From contig JAAOMT010000074.1 of assembly GCA_016748015.1 (NCBI GenBank), forward strand, positions 124,001-188,000: DNA of 64,000 bases, written 5' to 3'. The notes beneath the pieces were generated by a model. It made no database searches. It was not told the DNA's origin and saw only the letters and a list, made by a program, of their open reading frames with translations. The DNA comes from Geosiphon pyriformis uo1. Its lineage: Eukaryota; Fungi; Glomeromycota. Numbering within the stretch: the first letter of the stretch is position 1; every line of letters begins with the position of its first letter. This document shows positions 6,529-44,977 of the stretch, piece by piece. A program made the translations under genes and the position numbers.

Positions 6529-6935
6529 CTACAAATCTTGGCCAAAAAATTAATGAAATCAAGAAAATTGGAAAAGACTGGCGTATCATGAGAAAGTTGG
6601 CCAGGAATTTTCTTGGCAATCTGGGGGAATCCCAATGAAAGGGGATTCTATTTTATCTAGCTTTGAGGATCGGTTAATTATTACCAAATGCAGACCTCTT
6701 TTAAAAGAAAACAACCCAAAAATGACTAAAAAATAATATGGTGTGAGGGTCTGTGATTCTCAAGAGCCCCGCACAGATAGTTTATTTTTAGTGTACAAGT
6801 TTAATAAATAAAATCTGTATTATGTAAGGAGCGTAAATACACATTCTTAATCTATAAATTTATGAGAGCAGGGCATCTTTAATAAATCTCTTCTACATTC
6901 TACGTAATAGTCTGATTCAAAAAGCGGCCAAAAGT

Positions 6936-8993
6936 ATGAGCTGGTAAATATTTTGTTGTCTGTATCTTCACCTGAGGGAACTCTTGAACTGCCAAAAATT
7001 TAACACTACCGTTACCTTTACCAAGGAAAGGTATTGCCAAAGCCGTTGCACGTGTTCCACAACGGTTAAGAGGTGAAAGTAAGTAAAGTATTTAGGAAAC
7101 TAGTTGTCGAAAAAAGAGGTAGCCCAGTTGATATAGATATATTTTTTCCCTTTCGGTGACACCCGCCAACTTGTATGAGGGAGGACGATCGGTCGCTTAT
7201 GAGACATTTCAACATTCCCTTGTTTATAATGAAAATCAACAAGGATTCTCATTAGATTTTAGATTAAAGTAGAAATTTCAATTCATATTCATCAATTCTG
7301 TCTTTTCACCTGCGTTTAGCGACACATGATACTGAATTCGATGATATAAATGCAAGATTTGCTGAACTTGCAAAGAGGACTGAAAAATTACATACAGATG
7401 CAATCAAGTTTAGAGATGCGGTCTCGGGTACGTGAAATCAAAATTTATTCTTGATCGTTTCATTCTTTGTATAAATCTCTGATATATGCTTTGTTTTCTA
7501 GGAATGCTCAATCATCAAGCCAACTTTGCCGAAATTTTGGAAGATATTTATAACCCCGTAACTGGTGGCTTGGCTGCCGAAGTAGGGACAATACGTCGCA
7601 CGCAAACTCCTGCTCCATCGATGAAAACAGTTGGAGAGTTCTCGAAGGTTATGACAGATATTAGAGATACAATATTACCAGAATTGGTATGGAATTGCAA
7701 CACTTGTAATTTGAAATTTGGATTTTTTCAACTAGCCACTTTCTCTTATAATTCAGGAACTCATTGATCGTAAAGTAGTTCAACCAGCGAGTGATTTCTT
7801 TAACATTACTAAATTAATTACAAAGACAATTACAAAACGAGATCACAAGCGAATTGATTATGACAGACACAGGAATGCCTTAAAGAAATTAAAAGACAAA
7901 AAAGATAAATCTTTGAGTGACGAAAAGGCTCTTTATAAAGTAAGTATAATTTTCAACTTGTGAAACTTTAATTGCAAAATTTTTTAAATCATTTTTTTTT
8001 GGCTTTAAGCTCGAGGAACAAGTTGACCAATCGACTAAAGATTACGAGCATTATAATAGTTTACTTAAAAACGAGTTACCGATGTTTTTCGAGTATCGGA
8101 CACAATTTATCGAGCCCATATTTCAAGAATTTTATCATATGCAATTGAAAATTTACGGACTTTTATTAGACCGTATGGAGAAATTGGGAGCTTCTGGTTA
8201 CTTTGATATGGGCTCGGACATAATGGAGGGATTTGATACAAGGCGTGGTGATATACAAGAACAGATTGAAAGTTTAACGCTTATTGGGAGAAAAGCCAAA
8301 CTGGAACGACGCGATAGTGGTAAATTGATTATTCTCGGATTCTTTCAATGAATATCTCTTTAAAATATTCCTAATAATAGTGACTCTTCTATACAATAAT
8401 CAGATACATCATCAATCTCGGAAACAAATTCAGAAATTGCAAGAAGTCCAAGCTCCTTATCGACTACTGGGGCCTCTAGATCGCGCAGAGTTAATATCCC
8501 ACCGTTAGAAGAGAAAGATTATTACGATGAAGATGATAATCGTGATTATGAGGATGTCCCACCTGCATATACTCCCACATCCATTTCCACACCTAGTCTA
8601 CGAAATATCAATGCTGTTGGTACAAGTAGTAGCAGTAGTCGAAGCTCTCTAAACGCTATCCCTAAATTTTCAACAGCAGCAGCAGTAGCAGCTAACAAAG
8701 TACCTCCACCCCGTCCACCAACTCATACCAAACCAAGACCTTCCTTGAAATATGTAATTGCCTTGTATGATTATGAAGCTCAGGCAGACGGTGATTTGTC
8801 TTTTAAGAAGGATGATAAAATTCAAGTGGTCGAGCGGACCGAGGATGCAAATGATTGGTGGACGGGGAAATTGAATGGTGTGACTGGCGTGTTTCCAGGT
8901 TTGAACTTCACCAGAAAATATATTCATATTTGTCTATTCCATTTTCTTGCTCATTTCTTTTTTGAAACAGGAAATTACGTTGCTGAAATTTGA
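6936..8993 (+). CDS. Amphiphysin-like BAR + SH3 protein (Rvs167/Hob1-like), about 8 exons
   Basis: Micro-exon ATGAGCTG then [12 protein letters not shown]; BAR motifs [32 protein letters not shown]; C-terminal SH3 [30 protein letters not shown]|GNYV. Confidence 0.92.
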
Positions 8994-9366
8994 TCTATCT
9001 TTATCCGTTGATTTTCTTCATTAGATTGTAATTTATTTTTCGATTTTATCTTTTGATTTTGATAGACATTACTCTTTTCAAAAGAATATCAATTCACTCG
9101 AATTGTCCTTCCTTCCTTCCTTCCTTCCTTCCTTCCTTCCCCATAAGCCGGGTTCTTAAAATAGTTTTCATAAAGAAATTTCTATTAAAGATGAAGCTCC
9201 AGAAAACAGGGTATAATATTTTTAAAAAGAGCAAATTATTGGAATTACAAAGATAGATCTAGGAGAACAAGATTTTTTATGTTTATTCTAAATAGTCTAT
9301 GATTAAAAATTATAGGATATATGTAGTGATGAGTAAACTATAAATCAAGAGAAAAAAATTTCAAAT

Positions 9367-11178
9367 TCAAATTGCCATCTTATATTTTCCCTCTTCACCA
9401 TCTATTAAAGCTCGTTCTTCTTCCTCTAGCAAGAATTGATTACTATCTTCAGTTTCTTCTCCCATTGGAAAGTTATTCTCTCTAATTCCTTCGCTTTGGT
9501 CTATTATAAGATCACCTTCGGAAATTTCTTTTCGATAATGTATTCGATTATTATTAAGTGGGACATTGCTATTATTTAAAATGGCGTCGCCAGCAACACC
9601 TCCACCCGAATTTTCAACACTAATGCTTATTTTACGTGGCTCGTCTTGTGGTGAATTAGATTTATGGTAGCCATGTTCTCCATATGATGTGGAAGGACTG
9701 CTAAGCAACGGATTGGTAGCATCTTGAGCTCCCAATTCTTTTAACAAACTTGCCAATTCCATATTTGATTTCGTAACTTGACTCAAAGCTGATTTGAGTT
9801 CTTGTTTTCTTGGGAACCCGTGCATCTCATCTTTGACGAAACGTCCCAATTTGACAATAGTCTTAAAGATTGAATGAATTGAGTTAAACGTTTAGGAAAG
9901 ACTCCAAATAAGAAATGATTCGACCATCAAATGTACCTGAATAAAAGAGAACGTGTCACCCTGAAATCTAACTTGTACGCTATATTCAGCCTTAGGACTT
10001 GGTGTCCTTACTGACAGCAATGATCTTTTTAAATGTTTAGTTACATCTTTACTTGTCATTATGTTCGACATTAAATCTTTGATTTGATTTTGAGTGATTA
10101 ATCCTCTTTGTTGACTACCATCTATGGCAGAATGCTTTGATTGTTCTACAGTTTCTACCAATATTTGAAGGACATGTTCAAAAGAGGCGATGGCCACTTC
10201 TACTTTATTCATTAATTGTTCAAAAATCACTGATGGTGGCAGCGGATGAACAATATTTGTAGAAGATGGGATTGCTCCCAAATACGAAGGACTATTATTA
10301 TTTGAACGCGACAATGATCTGGCACGAAATGGTGCCGACATATTAGTGTATGGGGTGAACTCTTTTAAGAGTGGTGAGATGTTTTCCCATGCGAATTTGA
10401 TTTCCGCGATAGAGCCGTTCAGCATCAGGAGAAGGGTGCGTGAGTAACGTATATCATCAGGTGATTGAGTAAATGTTCTAAGTTGGTATTGAAGAGAAGA
10501 TATTAATGAACGAAATACCGAGATACATGATTGACAAGACTGAAGCACACATGCACATGTATCCCCATCAGGTCTTCGTGTTAACGAATCATTATCGAAT
10601 ATTTCCAAAGAATTGACCAATTCCTCAATGACCTTATTAGCGCTACGAAGTTCCTTTGCGAATATACGTTCATTTCCGGTGAAACTAGTGAACTGAGTAA
10701 CAGCTTTTAGTATTTGTGTAAGGGCATATAATATGCTCCTACTAGCTTCTCGCAGAGAAATATCGTTAGGCTGTAGATGGTCGGTAGTTGGGGACTTGAC
10801 GCGCAGAAAATAACCTTCACCACCTCGCTCAAATTCATTATTTGTACTTTGGCTACCAGAGGAATTTGAATCTTCCGAAAGATTCTTAGAATGTTTAACA
10901 AAAGGTGCTTGATAACTAATTACTGATTCATGACTTTCATTGCTGAGACTTCGATCACGTCGAGGAACCCCAAGCAAATTTGGATGACCACGTCTTTTTG
11001 CTTGCTTTAATTGTAGTTGCTCATTCTCAGTAATCGTGTTTAATGGAATTGAAGTATCTCCTGCCTGGCGACCTGTAGTGGTAGTCATAAATGTCAAATT
11101 ATCGGAGGATATTATCTTCAAAGATTTACTTGAAGGTCGATAATCTTGACTTGGAGCATCTTCGTTAGTTTCAGGCAT
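9367..11178 (-). CDS. SOG2 (RAM network) domain protein without a visible N-terminal LRR, 2 exons (11178-9937, 9861-9367)
   Basis: EASRSILYALTQI and DIRYSRTLLLMLNGSIAEIKFAW resemble the SOG2 domain; a GT-AG intron (9936-9862) joins the two ORFs in frame. Confidence 0.75.
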
Positions 11179-11600
11179 CAGTAAAGTCAGCGCAGAATCT
11201 TTTTTAGTTTAAACCCAGGTAGCGCGAATTTGTCGAGAAGTTGATCCACTAAAAATTCCCAAAAGAGGAATTGTGATCTGGGAAAGATTTTTTCCTTTCG
11301 CCGATCAGGATCCAAGTAACACCTTGGAAGTCTGCGAGTATTATCATTTATTCTGGCTGCTGCTTCTAATCAATCAACTCAAAAGTTAAATTTTTGCTCT
11401 TATTGTAACAAGAGTTTGTGAATTTCTTTGTATTTATATGTAGGCTTGATAATATTGTCTAAGAGTTGCACAAAATAAAAAAACGATAATAAAGGTTGGA
11501 TGTTTGTCGATTTATATGGCTAATGGTAACACATAATAATTAAATAATCTCTAAAAATGAATATAATAACTCCAATTCTAATGATGAATAAGTCGAATCT

Positions 11601-12924
11601 CTATGGCTGATCGGTAGTTTTCTTGACATAAATATTTCGTGCATTGTTTGGGCGACCATCTGCCAGCAACCCAGTACGCTCATTTGAAGAATCTGGTGAA
11701 ATAATAACCTCGGTATCGCCAACATAGAATGGCCCATACCCGAGACGCTTGGCCCGAAAGTGCCATGCAATACACATAATGAGGAGAATTCCTTGAAGAC
11801 ACCCCGTTACCAAAAATACGATCCAAGATGTCCAATTAGTTCCTGGCCGTATGGCTAAAGAGTATACAAACAAGAAAGATCCGGGGGTTTGCATAAGCAT
11901 CATTGGAATGCTGAGGGCACCGACAGCCTTTAACAAAAAGTAGATTTAAATTAATCCCATGTCAATATTAATATTTAATAAACAAAACAAGATTTTTGAT
12001 TATTCACCTTTCGTCGCCAAGTTCTCCATATCTGAGGTATATATTGAACCGAGGCCAACAGCATAGAAATGACCCCCAATAAATCTGCCCAATATATTGC
12101 CAATTCAGAAGTTGGCCTTGTGGCCAAGAAATACGCTGAGATTAGAGTGACCAATAGGAAATGAGTCAATACAGTAAACGTCACGCCCAAAGAAATACGC
12201 CACTCAAGGGAACGAGTTGATGGCGGATTTCCATAATGTATATGCGGTATGTATGTTGTAAGTTTACGATGCTCAGGGAAATAAAGAAGGAAAAGAATGA
12301 AACTAGAGAATTAATTGCTCTTGATCAAAGATAAATAAATTGCATTGAATTTTTAGAATTTTTAGAATTTAAATTATTTCAAAAGTTTAAATAGGATACA
12401 TTAACGTGAACATAGACCATTGCAAAGCGAGTTGAATTACCCCAAGGGTATTTTCAAAGCACTCGCCAGAGGCCTAGGAAAATCAATATAAAAGAGATTA
12501 AAAATGGGTACATCATAAAAACAAAAGTTCAACCCTTCAATCCTTTACACTTACCACATACGCACAGCATTGTATCATTTTATACTGTAAAATCACCATG
12601 TTATACAAACTTGAAGTACCTGACAGGGTGCCTAGCAACAGAAACCACGGGCTCAAGCCCTCACTACTTTTATTGCGGATAATTCTATAATGCTTTTATT
12701 GTTTTTTATTCAGAAAAAGAAATTTTCTTTAGAAGAAAATTCGTGATTCAATAGAATTCATATGGATCCGCTGTTCAGAATAACATAATAGAGAGGCACA
12801 CCTGAGGTAAGTAGCTGACCAAAAGTCCGCATGCAATAAAAATACTAATGGCGAGTTCAAGATTATTGTGACTAATATTACACTCCTTTTCAGGATCTTC
12901 GAGCTGTCGTATTGAAAATGCCAT
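11601..12924 (-). CDS. PQ-loop repeat membrane protein, 5 exons
   Basis: LVSYLPQ|HYRIIRNKSSEGLSPWFLLLG and VQYIPQIWRTWRRK|AVGALSIPMMLMQTPG give two PQ loops; the exons join in frame (12924-12802, 12692-12555, ~12473-12400, 12302-12008, 11927-11601). Confidence 0.93.
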
Positions 12925-17827: not shown

Positions 17828-18461
17828 CAGGAACCAAAAAAAATTTTGTGATGATGTACCTTTTTAATATAAAATTAATTAATATTAAACAATTTAATAA
17901 ATTATTTCTTAAAAATTTAATTTAATTATTTACAACTTAATTATTATATATTAAATATAGAATGTAGTATAAACATATAAATAATTATTTAAAATTAGAC
18001 AATAAAAACAAATTTATCTTATTAATACAACAAATTAAATAATTAATATTCTTAATAAATTTAGTTAATTAAATTTGTTTTTAATTTTAAAACTTTTTTT
18101 ATTTAGTTTAACAAGTAAAATTCAATTATTATTTAATACAATATAACAATTAAGTATTTTAAATTAAATATAACTTATGTTTTTTCTATATATAACCAGT
18201 TATTTAAACTAATTAAGACTATATTATACAATTATTTTAATTAAAATATTTTTAAATTAAAACTTATAATATAAATTTTTATAATATTAAGTATTTATGT
18301 ATTAATAATTTTGTGTTTATTAATTTATTTATTTTTTTATATTAATTAATGAGTGAGGTTCAAACATGACCTAATGCTATACATCATACCAATAATCTAA
18401 ACTAGGAGCAAATCATGCACTTTCTACACGTGACCAGCCACTCGAGCCAGTTAGGACAATA

Positions 18462-21400
18462 TTATACACCTATATGCACAGAGACTAAATCTCCAACATC
18501 TGAGAAAAATAAACAAAACTTACAAAATCCGAAACCAACCCCAAAAGCTTCAGCCACACCCAGCAACCTTACTATACCAGCCAAGAACACCATAGACAAA
18601 CCAGAAATTGATGTTAGAATAGAGCTGTCATAAGGGATCAAACCATGTTTTTCCATAAAAGCCTGGTGTTTGACATAAACCAACCAAATATCATCCTAAA
18701 ATGTGAAACAAAAGTTTTACACAAAGTCCACAATCTTTTTAGTCCCAACCTTAGAATCTTTAAAAACCAAGACAGATTTACAATACCAATTATTAAAAAC
18801 AAAGCTCTTATACAGAGCAACACCAATCCCAACCTCAGAAACACAAAAAACCAGCAACTGCAAAACACGTGAAGAGAATCAAAACAAACCAGAAAGAGCC
18901 TCCCAAGTTGAAGCATAAGTGTTCAACAACTGAACACAATCAGCAGTGTTATGAGGACAAGAAAAGATATGGTTTAAGACCTCAATATTACCACAGTACA
19001 AACACACCACACTGGGGTAACCCTTATCATACAAACGCTTACGAACAACAACTGGAAGCCAATGATAGAGGGCTTTCATGAAGTACATCTAACAACCAGC
19101 CATACGCATGCTAGTAAAACCAGCAACCAAGTAAAAATCAGGATGCCAAACCAGAGAGAACTTGAACCAATTAATATCAACACGCAAACTATTCACCACA
19201 ACCTGAGAACCAGATCCAATCTCCCATCGAGCATAATAAACAAAATGGAAAACATTATGTATAAAGTGTTTAGAGTTATCAGAAACCACTATATCACCAG
19301 TGCTCAGAAAATGTTCACTAACCAAGTAAGGCAAGTGCCAAACAGAAAGAACAGCATTCTTGGCAAGTGCATTAGCATGTTCATTGCCTGAGATGCCGGA
19401 ATGACTCTTAATCTTAATCCAAATTCTTATGACAAATGACATTAGCAATATGGTGACACTCAATCCAACAATGGTTTCTAAAATCTGGACAAACCAGCAG
19501 AGACTCTGACCTGCATGCATCCAAAGTGGCTTGACTGTCTGAAAACAAGTCAACCAAATGAAAAAGAGGCACACATTCAAAAGCCAAAGCAATGGCTTGC
19601 AATTCCATTAGAGTAGAAGAAACCAAACCAAATATCCCTACACTCAAACCTAAGTCAATGTCCTCAAAAAAGACCACAGCCCCAGCTTTCATGGCAACAG
19701 TTTTCAAACCACTCAGAGACCCATCCATGTACACAAAAAAACAGGCAGCGTTAGTAGCCGACAGATTGTTACAGATAACACCAAAATTATGAGATTGATG
19801 AACATCAGACAGAGTGGAATTTTTCACAAGAGAGGAGCACACAGAAGAAGAAGCAACACCACCAAAAAAACACACAGAAAGATCAAACCAGAAAAAAATC
19901 AGGCCATGGGAGTCCAACCTCTTCCAACACTTGAACATCTGCCAACTGAAAACAACATCATTTCAATCACGTAATTGTTCCACAAAAGTGATATCATATC
20001 GCTTGAGTAAAGAGACACATTTTAGAAAATTGATTTCACCAAGAACAAGAGACATAGGAGTACCACTCTGATAACAGAAAGCATAGGCCAGAGACCCACC
20101 CAGAAACAGATTACATCTGGAGAAAATATGAACCACACCTGTTAAGAAATTATTTGAAGAACTGATACTAACATGAACCAGAAACAGCAAGGGGTGACAA
20201 AGATGCCAGCTGAGAATCTAGAGATCATGAAACCTGTGAGAAAATAAGCAGCCCAAAATACCAACTGAATTTGCAAAAGCAATGACGGAAGCCAATTTGC
20301 TTTCTGCCTGAATTTGTTCAAAAGTTTTCAAATCATATAAAGAAGAATAATGAAGTGCATCATTGGGGAAATCAAGCAGCAGCCCAGACTTAGACTTCAA
20401 GACTTTGCAAATTAGAGTGTCCTATTTATTACACACACTAACAGAAAAAAAACTGAACCGAGTCTTATAGCTGATAATAGAGAACAGAACAACAGGAACC
20501 AAATAACTGAATTGTTTATCCAAGATGGCCTTTTTCAGAACAAGGTTGACAAAAAATTGGACATCCAAGTGAGTCTTGGCCAAGCTGGGCACTAAAAGAC
20601 CATTAGAAGACAAAAAAATACCAAGATAATAATAAGATTCATCTTTTTTGGCTATAGAAATAGGCAAGTCACTGACAGTTAGGTAAGAGGTCTCAACCCA
20701 GCAGTTGACAGAAATAGTCACAGTTTTGTTATTGTTAATCGAAATGTCATTAATCCTGAAGAACTCACTAGCAATATTCAAAATGTGTTGTGTAGTGGCC
20801 TGGCTGCTACCAACCCAGATGGTATCATCAACAAAAGCACTAGCAGCAAAAAACAATGTCAATCCAGCCTGAGATTCTACACAGCCAGTATTGAAAACAA
20901 AATGCGAATTCAACCTGTAATCATACATCTCCCCTTGCCTCTTGATCTCATATATAAGTGAATCATAAAATATGCACCAGAGAAGCAGCAAAAAAACTTC
21001 ACTCTAATTCAAACCATTATGCACCACATACCCACTAGTTAAGCCAAAATCTGTCATCACCCTGTTCCTGCAATTATTGTGGATGTTACCAAAAAATCTA
21101 ATGAACCTGTTACATATTTTAATCCTGATCAAACTCCTCTTGAGATGTTTTCAACCAACCAAATCATATGCTTTGCGCATGTCCTGTAAAACCAGCCACA
21201 GCTCTCTGTTTTTCTCCAAGGCATCTTCAACCATAGAACCAATGGCAAAAATAGGCGACTGCATTGTCGTACCCTTTAAAACAGAAAAATTGTCCCTTCA
21301 TAAAATGTCAAACTCACTGTAAACCAAAGATATTCTGTCAGATAAAATTTTAGAAAAGATCTTGTGGGCTGTTTCAATCAAAGCAATAGGATAGGTGTTC

Positions 21401-23128
21401 GTGAGAACACCCTCCCATTCATAGGGTTTAGGAATCATCGAAACCCAGGCTTCCTTCCAAGGTCCAGGCACCAACTCACAAACCAGGCAGAGATTCAAAA
21501 GCACCAAAAGCATATCCAAAACCACTCTGTTGTAATGCTTCCATAATTTATTAGAGATATTAGAAAGACCAGCTGCTTTTCCATCAGGCAAGCTCGAAAT
21601 GACACTACACATCTCATCATAACTAATCAATTTTATGACACCAGAGAAAACACCATTAAAAACGTAATCCAAAGACTGAAATTGGCATTTCCAATCATCA
21701 GAGAAATTTGAAACCACCAATCGTCTCCTAGTCTATCCCTCCATAATCCTGTCTACTTTAGATTTAACCAGCTCAGATTTCAAAACCAACTCATCATCCA
21801 CTACCAAATGATCTAACACTACCTTGTGAAATGGATGCTCTAAAACACTTTTGATAGTACAACTTTTATCCAACTCAAAACTCTCTATCCTACTCTCAAT
21901 GGCCTGTCTTATACAGCACACTTAGATTTCAGCATCTTGGAAGAGCAGTAAAACTTCCTTGCCTTAGCCAGCTCAGAGCAAATACCATTAAAACCAGACT
22001 CTGAAAGGAAAAGAGACTTCACCAATGAAGTGCCAACAGAGTCAAGTCTGTTTCATGTATCCAACAACAGAACAAAATCACTCCTAGAAGTCAAACAGAA
22101 AGCCTTTACCAGCTTAGAAACCAGCAACTCCAGCTTATGAAACCTAGAAGACACCTTATTGAAAACACTGTCAAAACCTTTGAACCACTTTTTCTTGAAA
22201 GTTTTACCTGCTGAAAGAATCATAATTTTGCGAATAATGTCCCATATTACATCCAAATCCGAAAGTTTCCCAGCCACAACAAATACATCTAAGAACATAG
22301 AAGCATTGGCAGCCATACCATCCCTGAACTCAGCCCACTTCAACTCATTTGCATCCTTGACATCAAACTTCCAGTGATCTTTATTGACTTGCTTATGTAT
22401 CGAAGAAAGACTTGTGTCTAACAAATCATTCAGACCCATAGAAACAAAAACAGCCTTATGATTAGTGTCAAAAAAATCATCAACATTTAACATGCCACAA
22501 TCCACAATTGCATTAATCAAGTTAGAAGAAAGAAACACATAATCAATTGTCTTAGCAACACCACAAGAATTGCACCAAGTTGGTAACTTAGCAAAAAAGC
22601 TCCCACCTAAAAAGTTGACCAAATCCAAATCAAAGCACTTCTTGAAACTGGTGCACTTGTGAGATCTGTCTTCATTGAAGTCACCACCAAGAATAACAAA
22701 GGAGAATTCATTTACAGCTTAGTATTGAGAGAATTAATTTCATTAGTCTAAGAAAAATGAATTGTCAAAGAGGCACCAGTATACAGCCCCAAAATGGAAA
22801 CAGAGAGTCTGTTCCTGAAAAGCAATTTTACCAACAGGAGCTAACTGGACACCTCTAGAACCTTGCACACATGTTTTGCCAGAGATGAGTTCATAATAAT
22901 TGCAACACCAGATCCCATGTGACCAGAATTCAGACCTAAAGTAAAAACACGAACACCAGCAAACCTATCCACAATCCAGGGGTGGATTTTTCCCTTCAAC
23001 TTTGTTTCAGTAACAACAGAAATTAGATTGTTCATATTATTATGCCAACATATGATGTCCATCTGTTTTGCACAACTGTTCATTCTTTTAACATTGCACG
23101 TAGCAATCTTCCAAGTAAACTCACTCAT
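18462..23128 (-). pseudogene. LINE copy 1 ORF2 (APE endonuclease, RT, RNase H, C-terminal CCHC), disrupted
   Basis: IATCNV, VTETKL, GGDFNE, TIDYVF, DTNHKAV; PIALIET, QDMRKAYD, AFVDDTIW; VYMDGS, ELQAIALA, FSDSQA, KSHSGISGNEHANALA; CLYCGNIEVLNHIFSC. Confidence 0.93.
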
Positions 23129-25036
23129 TAAGAAAGGGGTTGTGGAAGTGTACCAGCAGCCAGAGCCAAACTGTCAAAATGAGCAGACAAACTCAGCACT
23201 GAAGCAGCAAGGCCTTCTAACATATTTTCCAACTTAACAACATGGGGGAACACAGAAGAGTTCTTCACAATATAAGTAGCAATAGCAGTTTCATTACAAG
23301 TGAACTCACCCAAATCTACTCCCATCACTATATCCTCCTCTTGATTCTATGATGGGGGGGGAGTTACCAGCAGCTAACATCCAGGGCTAGACTGAGGAAC
23401 TGCTGGCATGAGTGACTCCAATCTCTTAGCCAACTCACCAATTTGTCTCACAAGGCTAATAAGACTGCTTTCAATGCTAACCAACTGTTTTTTCAAATCA
23501 TTTACAACAGGAGAAAGAGGTTTACCATTATTAATGAAACCAGAAGAAGGAACCTGTCGACAAAAAGAAACACCAGAAGAAGCACCAATTACTGACACCC
23601 AAGTTCTTCCATCAAACAAAGCCAGGCGAGAGACAAAAGCTGATTTTTTTTTTATAAATTACAGCCAGACAAACACGATCCTGATCAGAAACCACTCATC
23701 TCCTACGAACTCCAGAACTCCCACCCACAGAGCAGTTGGCAGTGATATGACCAAATTGTGTATACTGTGTGCAATATGCCAAGCAAAGACCAGTCCAGCA
23801 CAAATTCACACTCTTAAAAACTGGAATTAAACCAACAACAGCCAACTTGGACGCCTCATTCTCAAAACAAATCACAGCACACTGATTACGAACATATAAA
23901 AAAGGATTACGGCCAATAAAACAAGTCTTCCCATCATATGATTCAAGTAAACCAGAGAGATCATAAGCTGTAGTGCCAACAGGTAAGGTATACAACAATG
24001 CCTGATGTTGATCCCTTAATACCCATGTTTGTTTATTCTCTATAGCCAAAGCCACATGCACAGAATCTTTCTCTACCAGAACAGACCACTTGGAAGCAAT
24101 CTGGTTGGCAACTTCAGCTGACTTAAACTCTACTAGGGCCTTTTGTCAAAGACCAATTAACTGCATCCTGACTGATTTGATTGCACCAAACTTGGAAAAC
24201 ACTGCCACAATTGCCAATTTGGGAAGATTTACTGAAATCTCCTTGATGATCACCTCCTGATTTGTACGAATGTTTGCTTTTTTCAAATTATCATTAACCA
24301 AAATCTTCTCATTAATTGCCATCTTCCTAGCTTTATTTAAACTAAACTCTAATGTAAAAAATGATCTGATAATCTCTGGGAATTTTGAGGGAGCAGAAGT
24401 CTCACCAAAGCCATCCACTCAATAAAAAATTTTTTTAACTGAAATCAATTTGTCACTAACAGACTTCCCAGACACAGCTGATAAATCCACATCCAAAGTA
24501 AACAATTTTATAGGCTCGAAATGATGACTTCCCAGAGCACATGACTTGGGTGGCGACAATTGATTGGATCCACTAAACGTGCGAGAAGGGAGCTTTAGAG
24601 TACTATTGTCATCATTCATGTGTCCAAAAGAAGGCTGCTTTGGTGGACTGCCTAGTACGTATGTGCAAGTACAAGTCTTCTTCAGCATAGCGTCATCCAT
24701 ATTGTCATCCTTGCCCGATTCTACAAAGCTGGTCTCTTTGGCAACCATATTCACCATGTTTTCGACATCCAAGAGATTGCCCACACTGCTGACAACACTG
24801 CTTACATTGCTTTCCCAAGAAACCAGAGGCTTGTCACTGGCATCTCCAATATCTTCCAAGCTTAAAAGACCAGCAGACGAATTCAACACCACACCGACGA
24901 CAGGTATTTTCGGCTTCTTATAGGATGCACCACAAAAGTAGACAGTATTCACACACTTATTTTTGGTGGCCAAACAGGTCCCCAAACCCACCAAACCAGA
25001 ATTTGGACCACCAGCAGAAGAGCCTATTGGTTCCAT
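23125..25036 (-). pseudogene. LINE copy 1 ORF1 (two RRM-like domains + CCHC knuckle), disrupted
   Basis: IIKEISVNLPKLAIVAVFSKFGAIKSVRMQL, ALLYTLPVGTTAYDL and CTQYTQFGHITANC; internal stops. Confidence 0.85.
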
Positions 25037-25390
25037 CGTAACAAACAGGGGTGTATTAAAAGAAATAACTTAAGATAAAAAGGGAAAAAGAAAAAGGAAA
25101 AGCTATACTGTTAATATAATCTTCACTCTCGTTGTGGTCAGGGGATTGACGAGAGAAAGATTTTTAAAAATATTTTTTTAACTCATAAAAATTTTCATAT
25201 TAAAATAAGTTTTTTTTTAAATTAAATTTGGTTAAATTTTTTATTAATAAAAATATGTTTAAATAATAATAATAAGATTTAAAAGCTTTATAATTAAAAC
25301 AAAAAAACAATTTATATTTAAAACAGTATTTTTAATATTAAAATTAATTAAATAATTATTTAATTTTTTTTTATATTAATAAAAATTTTA

Positions 25391-26093
25391 AATGACAAGA
25401 ATTATCCAAGTGTTTTGTGCCTAATGTGTGGTGAGATTGAATTCTCTGATCATGTTTTTACGTGCTCAGCAGATGTGATTGTGCATTCTGAAGTTGTCTT
25501 CAGTCATATTAATTTATGGAAATCTCTGATGGGTGATCATTTCTCAGTGTCTTCTTCAGTGTTCCATACATTCACAAATGCATCTGATAATGGTATATAT
25601 GCTATATTGTGCAAAGAGTTTGTCCTTATGGATTGGGTTAAGAAAGCTGTTTCTATTTTTGGTGACAAAAAAAAAGCCATGTCAATTGTTGTTGAGTTTG
25701 TCCACTATTTGGCTGATGATCATTGTGGTAAAGCTTGGGTGCTAAGGTCTAAATTTTGAGCTAATATGGAAAAGTGTGGTTTGGTTTGCAACACAAGTGA
25801 GGTATTTGCTTCTCTCCATGGCTTGTCTGACTTGCTGTCTGTAGGTGTAATTCATATGCTTGGGGTTTTGGAGTCTTTTGCTGTTAGCTTTGGATCTAGA
25901 AAGCAGTACTCATTTTTTTCAGGCTTAGATAATAGTAGGGAGGTTTTTGTAAATATGTAGTGCTGCCTTGATGGGCTTGAGTGGCTCATCACATATAAGA
26001 AGCGCATGAGCCATCTCTAGTTTGATTCATTTTGCTTTGTTTTTGTATACTAAATAGTAGTTAGGCTGCATTCATTAAATAATAAAAAAAAAA
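25391..26093 (+). mobile_element. 5'-truncated LINE (copy 3): ORF2 C-terminus, 3'UTR and poly(A)
   Basis: DKNYPSVLCLMCGEIEFSDHVFTC is homologous to the CCHC region of copies 1 and 2; similar 3'UTR ending CATTAAATAATAAAAAAAAAA. Confidence 0.9.
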
Positions 26094-26333
26094 TTTATTA
26101 AAATAAAGATATTTAAAAAAATATATTACCAAAAACTATAATATTAAAAAATAAAAATTACAATATTTTTTTTTTTTAATTGTTAAAAAATTCAAAACAA
26201 TTATAAAATCTTTCTCTTGTTAATCCCCTAGCCACTATGAGAGTGAAAAATTTTTGGAGGAAATTACTTTACTTTATTCCTTTTTTCTTTGTTCATTTAA
26301 GTCATTTCTTTTAATATACCCCCTTTTGTTACA

Positions 26334-28277
26334 ATAGAACCAGTAGGCTCTTCTGCTGAAGTTTCTGGCTCAGTTTCAACTGGTTTGGAGACCCACCTGA
26401 ATGTTAAGAAAAATCATTTGGATACCATTTACTCCTGTAGTGCATCCTATAAAAAAACAAAAAAGCATGTGATTGGCATCATGGTTGATTCATTTGCAGG
26501 TCTTCTGAGCTTAAAAAAGGTTGGTGATGTTGGCATTAAACCTGTGGTGTTTTGGGGCAGCAAAGTTGGTAGCATAACCAGTAGTGTAAATGATTTATCA
26601 GATGTTGAAAACATGGCAAACACAGTAGCCAAAGAGACCAGTTATACAGAATCGGGTGAGGATGATGGTATGGACAAAACTACACCAAAATAAACACACA
26701 CTTAGACATATGTACTTGGAAATTCATCAAAGCAACCTTCTTTCAATTGTATAAGTAATGATAATAGTGAGCTAGTACTTCCTCTTCAGATAGTTTTGGG
26801 ATCCAATGGGCTGCCACTGAGAGGATCACATACCATGGAAATGTGGAGCTTCAATTTGTCGAAGTCTTTCACACTTGATATTGAACTTTCAGCTGTGCTT
26901 GATAAGAATGTTGGTGATAAGTTGATCTGTGTAAAAAAAAATTTCTATTGAGTAGATGGTTTTGGAGGAGCTTCTACTTCCTTAAAATTCTCAAAGATTA
27001 TCAAATCCTTATTTACTTCTGAATCTAGCATGAATAGGGCAAGAAAATTGGCAATTTATGAGAAAATTGTGGTAAATAATGATCTCAAAAAGGTTAGCAG
27101 CCATTCAGATAAGGAAATTATTGTCAAGGAGATTCTGGTCGATCTTCCCAAATCAGCTGTAGAATCTGTTTTTTCTAAGTTTGAGAAGATTATTTCAATT
27201 AAAATACAATTGATTGGTCTGTGGCAAAAAGCATTAGTGGAGTTTGAATCATCTGAAGTAGCTGATTTGGTTGCAGCTAAATGATCTGTTTTCATGAGAA
27301 AAGATTCTGTTCATGTAGCAAAAGCTGTTGATAATAAACTATCATGGGTTTCCAGGAATCTATATCAAGCATTGCTTTATACTCTTCCAGTTGGTACAAT
27401 GGCTCATAATCTCTCTGATTTGTTGGATTCATATGGTGAGAAAACTTGTTTCATTGGCCATAATCCTAGTTTATATGTGTGTAATAGATGTATAATTGTG
27501 TGTTTTGTCGATGAGGCATCCAAATTGGCTGCTATTGGTTCTATTCTAGTGTTTAAGGGTGTAAATTTGTGCTGGGCTGGTCTTTTTTTGGCCTGTTGCA
27601 CTTAATACAAACAGTTTGGTCATATATCTACAAGATGTTTATTGGGTAAGAATTCTGGTGTTCATGGCAGATGAGTGGTAACTCTTCAGGATCAGGTTCG
27701 TTTGGCAAACATATATAAGAAGAAGCAAATGTTTATTGCTCATCCAGTTTTGTTCAGTAGGAAAACTTGAGCCCAGATGGCTAGTGTTTCTTCTTCTCAT
27801 GTGGTTTTGTCGGGTTTTTTTGGTGCTGGTCTGTCTTCAGGTGCTAAACCTGTCCTATTAGTGTCTAATTCTCTTGATAATTCCTGTTTGATTGATCATT
27901 TGGCTTCTTTGAAATGCTTTTTGGAGCTTTTAGTGGATCAGGTTTCAGATATTTTGAAAAAATTAAGTTTTGTGGAATTGGTGCCTTTGATGTCCAGTCC
28001 TCATGTGTCTCCTCTGGTTATTATTGCATCTGTTGCAGCTAATGTAAACTCGGATATGGTTCTAGATATTACACTGGAGTCTCCTCCTCCCCCTTTTTTA
28101 GTTGTTGTAGATTCAGTTGCTAATCTTAGTTCAAGTAATTCTAGAGTTTTGACCACCAAGATGGGTGGATTGGAATCTAAGATGATGGCTTTAGAGGTGT
28201 CAGTTAAATCTGTTTTGGATAGATTGGATCATTTGTGCTCTGGTTTGGAATTATCAACTCCTCTTACTCCTCAATGA
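26334..28277 (+). pseudogene. LINE copy 2 ORF1, disrupted
   Basis: Colinear with copy 1 ORF1 (IIVKEILVDLPKSAVESVFSKF, ALLYTLPVGT); many stops. Confidence 0.85.
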
Positions 28278-31200
28278 GTGACTTAGTGTGAAAACTTGCA
28301 ATTTGTAACATTCACAGTATTAATGTTTTTGCCAAGCAGGAAGATATTATCCGCTAGCATAGAGATTCTGGAAATTTGGTTTCAATAATTACTGAGACAA
28401 AGCTAAGGTCTAATAGTAGGCTTTGGATTAGGGATAAGTTTGATAGAATTAGAGTTTTTTCATCTGGATTGGACAAGAGGTTTCTTAGTGCTGGAATTGC
28501 AATCATTATTAACACTTCTCTAGCTTATTATGTTTGTAAGATTTCTGAAGTGCTTAGAAATGGAATGAGTTCAATGAGTAATCTTTGGTTGGCTCCTTTC
28601 AATCAGATTGTTGTTCAGAAATAAATGTTCTGTGTCTATTTTGGGGCTATATGTTGGCACTTCATTGGTAATTTGGTTCTTTCAGGCTAATAAAGTCAAC
28701 TCTCTCATTGCAAAGACAGTGAATAAGCTTTCCTTCATTGTATTGGGTGGTGATTTCAATGAAGACAGTGCCTGAAAGTGTGCTAGCTTCAAGAAGTGCT
28801 TTGAATTGGGTTTAGTTGATTCTCTAAGAGGAAATTCATTTGTTAAGATGCTTACATAAACCAATTCTTATGGTGTTGCTAAAGCTTTCGATTATATTCT
28901 TGCTTTTTTAAGTTTGGTCAATGCTGTAATAAATGATAGTGTGGCCAGTGTTGAGGAATATTTTAATACCAATCACAAAGCTGTTTCTACTTCTGTGAGT
29001 TTGAGTGGTTTGCTCGATATCCAGTTGAGTTCAATGTGCAAACAGGCAAATAAAAATCATTGGAAGTTTGATATTAGAAGTGTGGATAAAACAAAATAGT
29101 ATAAGTTTAAGGATGCAACTGCAGCCAATGTTGCCATGTTCTTAGATGAGTTTGGGCTGGCCAGAAGATTGTCTGATCTGGATGTTATATGGAACATTGT
29201 TCCCAAAGTGATAATTTTTTTGGCTAATAGAATGTTCAAAAAGAAATGGTTTAAGGATTATGATGAGATGTTTACCAAAGAGTCTTTCAAGTTGCATAAC
29301 TTGGAGATTTTGGTTTCAAAAATTGTTAAGGCTTCTTGCAAGGTGAACTCAGGCCAGTTTGAGTCTTTTTTAAAATGCTGGGTTTCTCTGAATAGTGTCA
29401 AAGCTTCTGTTGTTCAGAATCTTGTGAGCTCTGGAGCAAGTTTGAATCATGTCTGTTCTGCTTTCTGTGGTGTGAGAAGGTCTTATCATGCCTCTAAACT
29501 AAGTCTCTGCAAGCTGAGGAGTCGGGCATAAGATCAACTATTAAAAGAAAAATGGAGAATTTTATGGTCAACAAAGGCCACATAATTCGTAGTGTTTTGG
29601 AATATTCATTCCACAAAGTTGTGTTGGATCATTTGGTTTCTGATGGCAGTTTGATTTTGGACCCAGTAGAAGTTAAGAGTAAAGTGGATAGTATAATAGA
29701 GAGCTGGACAAGAAAGAAAGTCATGCTAATAAGTGTTTCCAATTTGTGGCAATGTCAATATCTGCTGTTAGATTATGTCAATGATAATGCTTTTTCTGGT
29801 GTGATAAATGTTATCAGTTTGGATGAATTGACGCATGTGATTAAAGATTTACTGGATAGTAAAACTGCTGGTTTGTCTGGCATTTCAAATAAACTTTGGA
29901 AATATTGCGATGGTTCTGTGCTGGACTTGCTTCTGGATCTTTTGAACATTTGTTTGGTATGTGAGTCAGTTTCTTGTTATTGGAAAGAAGCTTGGGTGTC
30001 AATAATTCCTAAGCTCTATGAGTGGAAGGGTGTCTTAACAAATATTAGACTGATTGCTTTAATTGAGACTGCTCGTAAAATTCTTTTTAAGTTGCTGTTT
30101 GACAGGATTTCATCAACATGTAGTTTATTCAACATTCTGTGTGGGAACAATTTTTCTGTGCTCAAAAGTACTACTACTCAGTCTCCTATTTTTGCCATTG
30201 ATTTAGTTGTTGAAAATGCTTTGAAGAAAGATTGTGAACTTTGGCTTGTGTTTTAAGATATGTGTAAAGCCTATAACTCTGTGGATTGGCATTACTTGTA
30301 TAATAGTTTGGTTCAGATCAAAATGTGTAGGTGTTTTATTAGATTTTTTGGTTCTGTTCACAATGACCGTGTTAATTGAGTTATGACTGATTTTGGTCTA
30401 ACTTATGAATATTGAGTACATGATAGTCTTGACTAGGGTAAGGTTTTCTCTTCTTTGTTGTGGAGGATTTTTTATGACTCTCTTTTGTGTAAGATCAAGA
30501 GACAGAAGAGTTTGTGTGGATATCATATCAATACTAAATTTGTAGCTAGAACAGGTAGGATAGAAAACCAAAGCAGTTTAATTTCATTTCTGGCTGCTGG
30601 TGCATTTGTAGATAATACTATTTGGATGAGTAGCAGTCAAGCTGCCACTTAGTATATTTTGGACACTGCAAGTGAATTTTTTAGGGTGAATGACATTTCT
30701 ATCAATAACAAAAAAACTGTGGCCATTCCTATCAATCAAAGAGTTAGTGATGCATCATTGTTAATTAGTGGTCTACTGATTTTAGTTGCTTGCAAAAAGA
30801 AGTCTTATTGGTATCTTGGCATTTATTTATCATCTAAAGATTTATCCAAACCCAGTTTAGCTAAGACATATGTAAACATCAGATTTTTTGTTAATTTGGT
30901 TCTAAAGAAGGCTATTTTGGACAAGCAGTTTTTTTATCTGGTATCAGCTATATTGCAAACCATTGTCAATTATAGGATTCAGTTCAGCTTCATTTCTAAG
31001 AATATGTGTACAAGGTGGGATACATTAATTAGAAGGGAGTTAAGACTTAAAGCTAAACTTCCAAAAAACTTTTCCAATGAGACTCTTCACTATTTGTCTT
31101 TGTATAGTTTGAAATCTTTTGAGCAGTTGCAGATTAAGTACAAGGTAGCTTCTATGTTGTGTTTTTTAAATGCTGGTGGTATTTTTGGTCATTTGTTCAA

Positions 31201-32983
31201 TCATAAGTCTCTGAATCTTTAAGTTCTGGGTTGATCACTTATTCACCCTTTATGTTGTCTGATTAAGTTGTGTGTCAGTCCAGTCAATAATTTTTTGGCA
31301 GGTGTTGTCAAGATTTTTTTGGACTGTGACATGTCTCTTAACAATCTTTCTGTTTCTGCATTCTGCTTTTCTAGTGGAACACTAATATCTACAGTTTTGG
31401 AAGCTTCTTTGTTTCATGATGTTTCTTTTTCTTTTAAGAGGTTTGGAGTTACTTTTGCTGAGCAGTTGTATACCAAAAATGGTTTGGTTTTCGATTGGAA
31501 TAGCTTTTAATATTGGAAGAAACTTAATCCAAGAGGCTCTGTCCCTTATTGGTTCACTTTGGTTCGTGATTTTTTGGTTTGATCTTTTATTTCTGATAAT
31601 TTGCATGTTGAAGATTTGCAGACTATGAATGTTTACAGCTCGGGTGTAGTCTCCAGATTGGGCCAGTGCTTCTCTTCTGCAAATATGAGAGTTGTTAGTG
31701 TTTACACTGATGGGTTGTTAAAAGATTTAGGTTTATGTGAGATGAAGTGTAATGCTGCTGCTTACTTCTCTGATCTGGGTTTAGATATTGGTGCTAAGAT
31801 TAGTGAAATGATGTCTTTGACTATGGCAGAACTGCAGGCAATTGCTTTGGCTTTGAAGTGTGTTCCCCTTAACAGTTTAGTAGTGGTTTATTCAGACAGT
31901 CAGGCCATCTTGGATGCATATGTGGCTGAATCTGCTCTGGTGTCTCCAGACTTCTGCAATCACTACTAAATAGAATAGTGTGGCATTGTTAATTTAATTA
32001 AGGGAAAGCGGCTTGATGTTTCTTAGTACAAGGTTAAAGGACATTCAGGTGTTGTGGATAATAAGCATACTGATGAGTTGGCCAATCTGGTTGCAAGTTC
32101 TTTTTTGGCACTTTCTGTGTTAGTTAAGAAAAAATTTGTTAGAGCTGGTAAGATAGTGATGTCTGGAAACATTTATTATTTTGCTTGTGAGATTTTTAGG
32201 TCCATTAATCGTGCTTATTGAAAGATTGGTCTTGGTTTTAATGTTATTAATAATGGTTTACTTGGTAATGTGGATTGGTCCTGTGCTGCCTCGGTGTAGT
32301 ACCCTGACTCTCATATAGTGACTGGCTTTACCAGTAAATCTATGGCTAATTTGCACTCTTATTTTTTGAAGGCTCTCCACCGCTATTTACTGGTTGCTGT
32401 ACAGAAGCATTTGTATAGTAAGATTTACCTAAGTGTTTCATGTCTGCACTGTGGTGAAATGAAAAGTTTCAACCACTCTTTTGTTTGTGCATTTGACTCT
32501 GGAGCTCGTAAGAACATTCTTGAGTCTTATCTGGCCAAGTGGTATTATGTGTCTGCATTGGGCTTGCCATCATTTCATATCTTATAGATGCTTTCTTTGT
32601 GTGTCTCCAATGATATGTTGTATACCACCATGAGCAAAGGCTTTGTGTTCAAAGATTGGGTTTGGGAAGCTACATACATTCTGAGTAATACCAAGGTCAT
32701 AAGAAAATTTATTGTTGGTTTTGTTTAAAAATTGGGTGCTGCTCACCACATAGATATTTGGTTGGTTAGAGCTAAATATAGAGTATTGATAGAAAAAAGC
32801 AATTTAATTCCACTTAATGGTTCTGTGTATTTTGTGACTCATGGTTTGTCTTGTTTGTTTTTAGCTGGGGTGGTTAGATTGCTTGGGATTGCTGAGGCAC
32901 TTGGTATTTGCTTTGGTTTTCATAAACATTGCTGTTTTTTTTCTGGTATAGATAGTGTGGTTTTTGTTCTGATAAACTTGTAG
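28274..32983 (+). pseudogene. LINE copy 2 ORF2 (APE-RT-RNase H-CCHC), disrupted
   Basis: ITETKL, GGDFNE, LIALIETARK, AFVDNTIW, VYTDGLL, ELQAIALAL, YSDSQA, KVKGHSG, CLHCGE; many W/Q/R-to-stop changes. Confidence 0.93.
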
Positions 32984-33119
32984 TATTGCTCTGACTGGTC
33001 CGAATGGTTGGTCACATGTAGAAAGTGCATAATTAGTGCCTAGTTTAGATCACTTAGTTTAATGTATTGTATTAGGTGGTTTTTGGGCCTTATTCATTAA
33101 ATGTTAATAAAAAAAAAAA

Positions 33120-38771: not shown

Positions 38772-38834
38772 TTTCAAAGATACATCAGAGAATTTTACTT
38801 TATTCAAATTTTCTTGACTTAAATTTTTGTAACA

Positions 38835-38880
<46 letters not shown>

Positions 38881-39152
38881 TATTTTGTTGTAAAAATAAA
38901 TTTTTTGTGTATTTGAATTGAAATTAAAATCGTTAGGATCAATTTTTGAATTAATATCTCATAATATGGTTTATATCAGTTAATAAAGTGATTAATTAAT
39001 TAATGAAAACATTATCGTAAAAGACTTTCGTGATTGGAAATTGTTAAGATGAATGACGTAAAAATCTCGAAAAAAAGATTTTTAAACTATAATTATTTTT
39101 AAAAATTCATCGTACAAAAATCAATAATTAAATAATTAAATAATCAAAAATC

Positions 39153-39183
<31 letters not shown>

Positions 39184-39441
39184 ATTCCAGCTTTTCAACT
39201 TTCCCACAGATATAATTAGTATAATTATTTTTATTTTTAACTTATTGATATTATTCGTTTTAATTAAACAAACCCTTTTATTTTTATTTTTTTTAAAAAA
39301 AAAAAAAAGATAAAATAGATAAAAATATTTGATTTATTACTTTAAACATGATATCAACAATTCAAATAATTTATCTTAAATTTTAATTTTAAGGCTCGTC
39401 AAATTTCTTATTCCATAATTATTTATATTGATATTATATAA

Positions 39442-39472
<31 letters not shown>

Positions 39473-40877: not shown

Positions 40878-42308
40878 ATGTTTAATTATTAATAAAAAGA
40901 TTTAATATTAATTTTGCTAATTAGTTTTTAAATTATTGTAATTTGTTTTTTATTTGGAAATATTTCTAATATTATAAGAAATTAAATTTTAAAAATTTAG
41001 TTTTTGTGTAATTTAGTTATATTATTGTATTTATTAAAAATAAAAGTTTTATAAACTAATATGTTTTAAATGTTTTTAATAGTTTTTATTTATATTAATT
41101 TTAATTAAATTGTTTTAAGATAACTAAAAAGTATTTATTAATACTAGTATAAATATTAATGCTGTTTTCTATTTTTTATATCCGAATTTTAAATAAAAAT
41201 TAGTGTTTATAATATGTTTTTATCTATTATAATTAAAGCAGTTGTTTTAATATGATTAATAATAATTGTATTGATTTTTTTGTTAATATTTATATAAATT
41301 TACTTTTTATTTTATATTTTAATATTTATAAATATTATTTGGTTGTTAAAAACTAATTTATTTTAAAAAATATGTAATATTTTATTGGAAAATTGTTTAA
41401 TATTATTTTTATTAGTTAAAAATTAAAATATATTAAAAAATTTATAAACAAATTATTAATCTGTAATTTTTATTTAATATGTATTTTAATATTTAGATAA
41501 ACATATATATTTTACGTTAATAAGATTAATAATTACTAATTTTTGTTTTTATTTTATTAAAACTTTATATAAATATCTGTTAGTTGTTTTAAAAAAAAAT
41601 TGTATATTTTATTATATTTAAATGTTATTTGTTTATATTGTAAATTGATAAAAAATTCAAATTATATTTTTTTGTATAATGTTAATTTTCTTATTAAAAA
41701 AATATTGTTTCAAGTACTATTGTAAAGTAAGTATATATTTTTGGTTATTTAATTGCAAATTTACTAATTATTTAATTTTTACACAATTTATTTGCTAAAA
41801 ATCGTCTTTATATGACTGTAATTAAGAATTTGGTTTTAAAAATTTGGTTTTTTAAAACTATAAAAGTGTTTAATAATACCAAAAAAATTATTGTATATAT
41901 CATTTTATTTGTATATAATATAATAATTTATTATAAAACAAATATTTGATTGTTCAATACTAAATTGCAAATGTTTTATAAGTTTTAAAATTTGTTAATT
42001 AGTAATAATTTGGTATTATCAATAATTAAAAATTTGTTTTATAATAGCTTTAGTGTAAATATTTACAAAATTAGTTTTAATTTAAATATTTAGATTATAT
42101 TTAATCTTATTAACTTTTTAGCTTTAATGTTTTTTAAGTTTTATAATAATATTTATACTTCTTATAATATAGATTTATAATATTATTTTAATAGTATAAA
42201 TAACTAATTATATATAAAAAAATCATGAATTATATTTATTTTAAAATTTTATTTAATTATATATTAATAAATAATAATTAAATTGTATTTATTAAATAAA
42301 TAAATAAA
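40878..42308 (+). mobile_element. Hyper-eroded LINE (copy 4): post-RT region, CCHC region, C-terminus, 3'UTR and tail
   Basis: KRFNINFAN*..IWKYF*YYKKLNFKN (from 40895), KKLY..NVICLYC (CLYC 41630-41641), LYMTVIKNLVLKIW (from 41806) and NIDL* (stop 42178-42180), then a 3'UTR matching a C>T/G>A-converted version of copies 1-3. Confidence 0.85.
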
Positions 42309-43385: not shown

Positions 43386-44330
43386 ATTTTTTTAATTAAA
43401 CAAAAAAATTTTAATATTGTTTTTTTTTTATTAAAATTAATTAATAAATAAAAGTAGTTATAATAATATTATAAAACTTAAATTAAATATAATATATTAT
43501 TAAATACCAATAGATTTTAATTTAATATTAAAAATTTCATTACTATTTTAAAAAATAAACTAAATCTTAATATTATAATAAAATTTATATTAATAATTAA
43601 AAAAAATAAGTTTATTAAAAAATTAATTTTTTTAATTACATATTTTATTATACAAAAATAAATCTTATAATTTAAATTTTAATAAACACAATTTGTATTT
43701 AAAAACTTTATTTATTATTTAATAATTAAAAATAATAGCAAAAATTATAGTTTTAATATAAAATATTAAATTAAAAAATTAATTAACAGAAATTTTAAAC
43801 TTAATAAATAGGTTTAAAAATGTTTTAACAAATTAAAAATAGTATTTTTATAATTAAAAACTATGTAATTTAAACTTTAATACTTATAATAATACTAATA
43901 TTTAAAAGTTTTTTATTAAATACAACTTTTTTTTAAGATATTAATTTTAATAATAACAAATTAAAAAAGTATTTTTTAAAATTAAAAATAATAATAATTT
44001 TTTTTAACAATAGTTAAATTTAAAAAACCAAGAAATAAAACAAGTTTAATTATAAATTTGAGAATTAAATTATTAATTTCAAAAAAAATAGTTAAAAAAA
44101 ATCAATTAACTTGAATTTAAATATATTATAAAAAAATTTCTTCAATATTTTTGGTTATTATAATAAATTACAAATAAAAACAGCTTTAAATATATTAAAA
44201 ATTTTAAATTAAACAATAATATATTATTATAAATTATTAAACTTTAAAATTTTATTAAAATATTAAGTATTTTTAATATTATTAATAAATATATTTTTTT
44301 TTATTAATATTTAACAAATAAAGTCCAACT
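43386..44330. repeat. Extremely AT-rich eroded repeat block (continues 42310-42412)
   Basis: Aligns to 14590-15320, e.g. AAATAAAACAAGTTTAATTAT in both. Confidence 0.75.
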
Positions 44331-44977
44331 GTTATTTAATATATAAAATCAAACTAAATAGCTTAATCTAAATACAATTTATGCTCTTATTACATGTGGT
44401 CAACTACTTGGATCAGACAAAACAATAATAAACATCTATACTAACACATATATTTTCACCTAAACCTAATACTAAACTATTATCTTTGATTAATCCAGCT
44501 TTTTTTATATTCATTCTATGCTTGAACTTTACAAATCATACTTTAATACAATGCAATTCTATCAGATGTCTTACATATTTAACAACAATAGAAGCAGTTT
44601 TTTCTTTTCTATTAAAAACCATAACAGTTACCATATATCAGTCTCTTAGCACAAATCTTTTGTAAATTGCTGTATATAAACTCACATATAAATATATTTT
44701 TCAAGTGTCCTGGATGATCATGATTGAGTGTTAAAATATAAAATACAGCATCAAATAGTTCTTCGCCATTCGCGTCAACATTTACAATGGTTCCTGGGAA
44801 AAATAAATCGGGACTAAAAAATACCTGGATACTTATCTACAATCACGTGAAATATCGATATATGATGCGCACGTTCCTAGATGGTGTTTGATTTGGTAAA
44901 TCGCGGCGCGTCAAATTTATCAAAATTTCGTTTATTATTCTTGACAACCTTTGCGCTATTATTGACGGACATCAAAA

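Follow-up and report, generated by a model that had tools for sequence, protein, structure and literature searches.

We analyzed a 64,000-nucleotide stretch of the genome of Geosiphon pyriformis (Glomeromycotina; assembly GCA_016748015.1, contig JAAOMT010000074.1, positions 124,001 to 188,000), here called the window, which has an overall GC content of 29% and holds several dead copies of one retrotransposon family. The element is a non-long terminal repeat (non-LTR) retrotransposon, a long interspersed nuclear element (LINE), with two open reading frames (ORFs), an endonuclease-reverse transcriptase (RT)-RNase H architecture, a poly(A) 3' end, and 5'-truncated copies. Strongly eroded remnants are called ghosts. 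The LINE copies and the host genes that served as a control are as follows, in window positions.

6900..12850, no strand given: expressed single-copy host genes, including SOG2 and PQ-loop families (control), with read-supported introns
18094..18247, minus strand: copy 5, a ghost of the LINE 3' untranslated region (UTR), ungapped, 11% GC (z of 48 against shuffles)
18335..25165, minus strand: copy 1, full length, dead (self-comparison of the window)
25217..25348, minus strand: short ghost piece of the LINE RT region (z of 11)
25360..26093, plus strand: copy 3, a 3' fragment with a poly(A) end (self-comparison of the window)
26205..33110, plus strand: copy 2, full length, dead, with a poly(A) end (self-comparison of the window)
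40899..42304, plus strand: copy 4, a ghost of the 3' part of ORF2 and the 3' UTR, about 11% GC
44294..44679, minus strand: copy 6, a 3' fragment of intermediate erosion

Copy 1 consists of an ORF1 with an RRM-like and a Cys/His knuckle region and an ORF2 encoding endonuclease, RT, and RNase H. An alignment of 11 LINE copies gave two family frames of about 677 and 1548 codons. Domain matches on the family copies were RNase_H (E = 4e-5) and, weakly, Exo_endo_phos, RVT_1, and RRM; precomputed PF00078 and PF00075 assignments are present on members of the family, and when a 234-residue piece of copy 2 was the query, all matches listed were G. pyriformis proteins. The copy 5 ghost directly adjoins the 3' end of copy 1, and the short RT ghost sits in the AT block that separates copy 1 from copy 3. 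Copy 4, which shares 75% identity with a ghost located on a different contig, lies outside the interval from 18332 to 33119 given in an earlier note on this DNA. In the LINE copy of L008:1-4145, the 5' segment (3708-4145) is inverted relative to 14-3692, like a twin-priming inversion. Aligned directly, copies 1 and 2 are only 60% identical with a transition/transversion ratio (ts/tv) of 1.3 and belong to separate subfamilies, so that comparing this pair by itself cannot demonstrate hypermutation.

The two full-length copies have been inactivated mainly by transitions, as the earlier note had described for their colinear frames. Copy 1 has about four frameshifts and 19 premature stops, 16 of which can be derived from the Trp, Gln, or Arg codons of other copies by C-to-T or G-to-A changes alone. 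Copy 2 has two frameshifts (a 31-bp insertion near 28554 and a 4-bp deletion near 29501) and about 27 premature stops, namely, 26 that were scored, with 21 traceable in the same way, and the one at 28289; it has also lost its start codon, and its FVDD motif now reads FVDN. The seven altered codons of copy 2 that had been listed previously (26334, 28289, 28355, 28857, 30254, 30434, and 30614) are as stated, and other copies carry ATG, TGG, CAR, or GAT there. The contexts assigned to them were CpA, CpC, and CpT; the first two hold, while CpT is possible only at 28857, and the reading of the FVDD-to-FVDN change at 30614 as non-CpG is doubtful because the site may have been CpG (a sister copy, L001, reads GAC-GAT at this place). 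CpG depletion was also confirmed, with an observed/expected ratio (o/e) of 0.16 in copies 1 to 3 versus 0.92 in host regions; the switch lies no more than a few hundred bases from the gene boundaries. An Illumina-type DNA run, possibly from the source sample, contains 0.86 of the copy 2 words, which shows that the changes in copy 2 are not assembly errors. None of these words was present in a run that behaves like RNA, which is no proof of silence.

The copies differ widely in how much C and G they have lost. At family-constrained columns, 22% of C/G had been lost by transition in copy 1, 26% in copy 2, and 70% in copy 4. Over the common 3' UTR, ancestral C/G was kept at 52 of 69 sites in copy 1 (75%), 46/69 in copy 2 (67%), 32/65 in copy 3 (49%), 26/65 in copy 6 (40%), 16/68 in copy 5 (24%), and 6/66 in copy 4 (9%), and A/T was kept at 75 to 93% of sites over the six copies (85% in copy 4). 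Because the 3' UTR consensus is built in a way that favors C/G, and because the distance between subfamilies brings in transversions, these values form a series and are not exact rates. Both measures bear out a previously claimed gradation from copy 1 through copy 2 to the far more eroded copy 4, except that copies 1 and 2 lie close together (22 versus 26%) and subfamily distance confounds part of the gap. The order 1, 2, 3, 6, 5, 4 most likely reflects age rather than graded intensity; consistent with this, younger copies lie beside ghosts, and transversions are somewhat higher in the older ghosts.

We determined the mutation spectrum from sister LINE copies on three other contigs of the assembly: the pair L001 and L003, and the trio that they form with L012. 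Over 6.7 kb, the pair differs by 567 transitions but only 11 transversions and 2 indels (ts/tv of about 50; 0.003 indels per substitution). When the changes were polarized by outgroup copies, about 96% were GC to AT, i.e., C:G to T:A, with both strands affected about equally, and 333 of the 567 transitions (59%) lay outside CpG. The non-CpG rates were equal at synonymous (0.11), missense (0.13), and nonsense (0.14) positions. The differences therefore arose after insertion, and we rejected selection or the divergence of active lineages as their source.

Sequence context had a strong effect on the rate. The hazard per branch in the pair was 0.42 at CpG and 0.07 elsewhere, about a 6-fold difference; thus, the earlier description of the process as not restricted to CpG stands, with CpG being the strongest target per site. 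In the trio, the C-to-T rates were 0.28 at CpG, 0.10 at CpC, 0.09 at CpT, and 0.07 at CpA, which makes CpA the weakest or near-weakest target, and in the pair CHH (0.137) exceeded CHG (0.092). A 5' T doubled the rate at non-CpG cytosines (CpH) in the trio (TpCH, 0.12, versus ApCH/GpCH, 0.064), whereas the 5' base had no effect at CpG (TCG, 0.25; ACG, 0.32). Neither CpG-only decay nor TpCpG-type mutation fits these data, given the non-CpG majority and the absence of a 5' effect at CpG. Repeat-induced point mutation (RIP) indices, as recommended in the earlier note, were negative for copies 1 to 3 (TpA/ApT, 0.76; substrate, 1.46).

The load was even among the trio (8.3 to 9.2% of non-CpG sites lost, P = 0.60; 25 to 30% of CpG sites), and a search for spatial clustering of C-to-T changes in the sister LINEs found none, though many light rounds of RIP could average out likewise. 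Same-strand changes were not in excess in the pair and were weakly so in the trio (P = 0.03 to 0.07). The sister LINEs showed no enrichment of mutations beside mutated CpGs, on which ground collateral mutation around repaired CpGs was rejected, and no excess of CC-to-TT tandem changes (6 found versus about 11 expected).

Host DNA served as the reference. The genes at 6900-12850 have 12 GT-AG introns, supported by the RNA-like run, and comparison of this stretch with the contigs of one sample showed no differences. Their introns have 27.5% GC and a TpC o/e of 1.33, fourfold sites have about 30% GC, and coding CpG o/e is 0.92; the AT deserts have 8 to 11% GC, with a TpC o/e of about 0.5. For host duplicates we used the following cluster.

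JAAOMT010000664.1, about 984-1060 kb: BTB-BACK-TLD tandem cluster with lipase neighbors (L009, L010, L011)

Nine linked pairs from it, covering 8.2 kb of coding and noncoding DNA at 89 to 95% identity, differ by 341 transitions, 299 transversions, and 46 indels (ts/tv, 1.14; 0.07 indels per substitution) and have mostly kept their CpGs (o/e of about 0.6 to 0.9). The non-CpG ts/tv was 30 in L001/L003 versus 1.0 in the host duplicates (Fisher P of about 1e-59). In the host paralogs, C-to-T changes are only 1.6 times as frequent as transversions at C, which puts the LINE excess over the host at about 30-fold for CpH and 200-fold for CpG, rough values that rest on about ten transversions. Transversions per site (0.020 to 0.036 in the duplicates versus 0.0016 in the LINE pair) make the duplicates more than 10 times older, and they were therefore present, similar, and linked throughout the erosion of the LINEs. 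That they were spared rules out drift across the whole genome and, on the evidence of one cluster, speaks against duplication as what sets the process off. These results show a transposon-confined, both-strand, neutral, and evenly loaded C-to-T process that acts in all contexts, CpG first, and the earlier claim of a repeat-targeted C-to-T process is upheld. Also in the cluster are a gene call in which lipase and TLD are fused and fragments that are broken and inverted, and its mosaic identities suggest gene conversion; we saw no hypermutation there.

We think it probable that the LINEs undergo chromatin-directed cytosine methylation in all contexts, by a DIM-2-like and a CpG enzyme, and that the methylated bases are steadily converted to T; the methylation, the enzymes, and a vegetative rather than premeiotic timing are what we infer within this explanation. 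Transposon DNA would be recognized as transposon or heterochromatin and not merely as duplicated sequence. A DNMT1/DNMT5-type enzyme would methylate CpG densely, and a DIM-2-type enzyme would methylate CpH more sparsely. Marked cytosines would then become T on both strands, mostly as independent events and steadily after insertion, at about 200 (CpG) and 30 (CpH) times the host C-to-T rate, through either spontaneous conversion with poor T:G repair or an enzyme-driven step. Young copies would be killed by nonsense codons, and old ones would finish as deserts with 8 to 11% GC. Between the two options in the earlier note, the data agree more with broad-context methylation plus deamination than with a RIP analogue, given that linked host duplicates escaped and that the load was even and showed no clustering; the note's interpretation as a whole is partly supported.

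Several points weigh against this explanation. The ts/tv of about 50 far exceeds what is known of passive decay in plant or mammalian repeats, and spontaneous decay by itself may thus be too weak an explanation. The CpH rate climbs 7-fold, from 0.028 to 0.199, as pyrimidines become more numerous among the six flanking bases, an effect that matches no known DIM-2 preference. Moreover, the clean spectrum was obtained for a single LINE subfamily (the ts/tv of other repeat pairs was 5 to 25), and one gene cluster supplied the host-duplicate control.

It is also conceivable, though we hold it to be the less likely case, that a dedicated transposon-directed mutator is at work, a catalytic methyltransferase or deaminase with specificity for CpG and pyrimidine-tract CpH that acts in vegetative coenocytic nuclei and spares duplicated host genes. 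Such a mutator might stand outside Dikarya as an independent counterpart of RIP, invisible to the standard RIP indices.

Canonical RIP, as known from Neurospora and other ascomycetes, depends on RID, is premeiotic, and is triggered by duplications of at least about 400 bp and at least 80% identity, most strongly by linked repeats. It prefers CpA (or CpT) targets, gives positive product and substrate indices, and acts in episodes that leave clustered changes and an uneven load. A homology-sensing process of this RID/Masc1 type with relaxed context, from which euchromatin, selection, or rare sex shields the host duplicates, could account for the near-pure C-to-T change on both strands and for terminal AT deserts that resemble RIP relics; it would also agree with the weak same-strand excess in the trio and with the report of RID from arbuscular mycorrhizal (AM) fungi (PMC8298701). 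We regard it as unlikely. Linked host duplicates of 350 to 2000 bp remain unmutated, including noncoding and pseudogene pieces, CpG rather than CpA is the top target, the load varies neither along copies nor between them, the indices are negative, and ghosts appear to have gone on eroding far below 80% mutual identity. Equally doubtful is a transposon-directed cytosine deaminase (AID/APOBEC-like) or an oxidation route (TET/JBP-linked) that would account for the non-CpG changes, with ordinary CpG decay running in addition. The TpC and pyrimidine-tract preference at CpH, absent at CpG, suggests two processes, but changes are not clustered, are not clearly processive, and are not enriched next to mutated CpGs, and ACA and GCA are still strongly mutated.

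There is very little to recommend editing or errors during retrotransposition, or unrepaired UV damage in heterochromatin. The elements are retrotransposons, and the pyrimidine-tract bias resembles UV hot spots; however, both strands are affected about equally, on which basis cDNA editing was rejected, loss runs to near completion with age, and the nondipyrimidine sites ACG, GCG, ACA, and GCA are heavily mutated, with UV damage rejected for want of a CC-to-TT excess. Least probable of all is a genome-wide AT-biased mutation with CpG decay, scaled by age, the case that the earlier note had named as its refutation: the genome is AT rich and older ghosts do show somewhat more transversions, but neutral-like host sites stand at 27 to 30% GC and, at matched divergence, LINEs and host differ in non-CpG ts/tv and indels per substitution as given above.

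Other repeats and AT-rich DNA lie nearby. The AT deserts at 4000-5550, 13900-15900, 33110-33950, and 43400-44300 have 7 to 10% GC and are TpC depleted like the ghosts; mapped to the LINE, they gave no convincing match. One piece, 14875-15173, matches 43846-44134 at 80%, with shorter matches to 33261-33365 and 4611-4712, which suggests a second eroded repeat. AT-rich DNA is not always a ghost transposon, since the segment at 38800-39800, downstream of a glutathione S-transferase gene, has 8 to 17% GC yet keeps CpG and TpC. Many long AAT/TTA-type and other trinucleotide microsatellites occur at 50300-57100 and 61600-62050, around a gene-rich stretch. An unclassified repeat of about 1 kb (42383-43394; 28% GC, CpG poor) has copies in L001, L004, L005, L007 (two, inverted), and L008; its closest pairs are 91% identical with ts/tv of 6 to 10, below that of the LINE pair, and in L001 it splits a dUTPase-bearing element. 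In L001, L004, L007, L008, and L012, the LINEs are accompanied by LTR-type elements that have gag-like, aspartic protease, and dUTPase calls; these elements are CpG depleted and apparently eroded too.

With these findings, transposon control that is irreversible and works by mutation reaches into Glomeromycotina, a group for which an absence of RIP signatures was reported, in a form whose signature escapes CpA-based indices. They separate the mutational killing of transposons from homology sensing, so that a genome could erase transposons yet keep gene-family expansions. It follows that many AT-rich intergenic deserts are old transposons, that ages estimated from the divergence of these repeats come out far too high, and that more than a hundred, by a wide margin, of the "hypothetical proteins" annotated in Geosiphon are pieces of dead LINEs. 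The present analysis contributes a matched control from host duplicates, a test of homogeneity across three copies, and the pyrimidine-tract effect.

Among known systems, RIP shares with the Geosiphon process C:G-to-T:A change on both strands, few transversions and indels, transposons killed by stops, and AT-rich relics. Unlike RIP, the process has no CpA preference, negative indices, spared linked host duplicates, and an even load among copies. Because it fails two defining tests of RIP, context and duplication trigger, it should not be filed as RIP.

CpG is the main transposon target here, as in the TpCpG RIP-like hypermutation of Pucciniomycotina (PMC3318451) and in the CpG signature linked to a Masc2-like DNMT1 (PMC4352252), but Geosiphon lacks the TpCpG preference of the Pucciniomycotina type, and most of its events are non-CpG. 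These basidiomycete signatures have no CpH component. The earlier note had tied RIP, and with it RID and DIM-2, to Dikarya, a restriction that published work does not support (PMC8298701, PMC11258239, PMC11105155). AM fungi reportedly have DNMT1, DNMT2, DNMT5, DIM-2, and RID and very high 5-methylcytosine (5mC) (PMC8298701), and in Phycomyces DIM2 is present and transposons are methylated at CG and CHH (PMC11258239). Rhizophagus irregularis (10.1101/2021.03.30.436303, PMC8298701) and Phycomyces are related lineages that methylate transposons and have DIM-2, and the CHH-over-CHG order of the Geosiphon changes is that of Phycomyces transposon 5mC (PMC11258239); unlike in Geosiphon, no hypermutation has been reported in either. 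According to a bioRxiv paper (10.1101/2021.03.30.436303), neither Gigaspora margarita nor Mucoromycotina yielded any RIP signatures. A RIP-index signal in Entomophthorales (PMC11105155) is an earlier claim of RIP-like change outside Dikarya, made from composition indices only, whereas the Geosiphon spectrum was measured on alignments of copies, alongside a host control, and the indices are negative.

We found no report of such hypermutation for Geosiphon in literature whose coverage excluded most subscription papers, apparently including the Geosiphon genome paper, and Geosiphon is absent from the portion covered of the supplementary tables of a 1,239-genome RIP survey. The process is real and apparently unpublished, and it appears to belong to methyltransferase-linked repeat mutagenesis. 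The closest known mechanism is the mitotic mutator of Zymoseptoria tritici, in which Dim2 drives C-to-T mutation in repeats (PMC8016269). There, too, the changes are confined to repeats and are more than 95% C to T; in Z. tritici they need no cross and are tied to methylated transposon regions. In Z. tritici, however, more than 98% fall at CpA and CpG is spared, while in Geosiphon CpG ranks top and CpH follows TpC and pyrimidine tracts. The lineage also differs, being Glomeromycotina here, and Dim2 dependence and mitotic timing would be presumed for Geosiphon.

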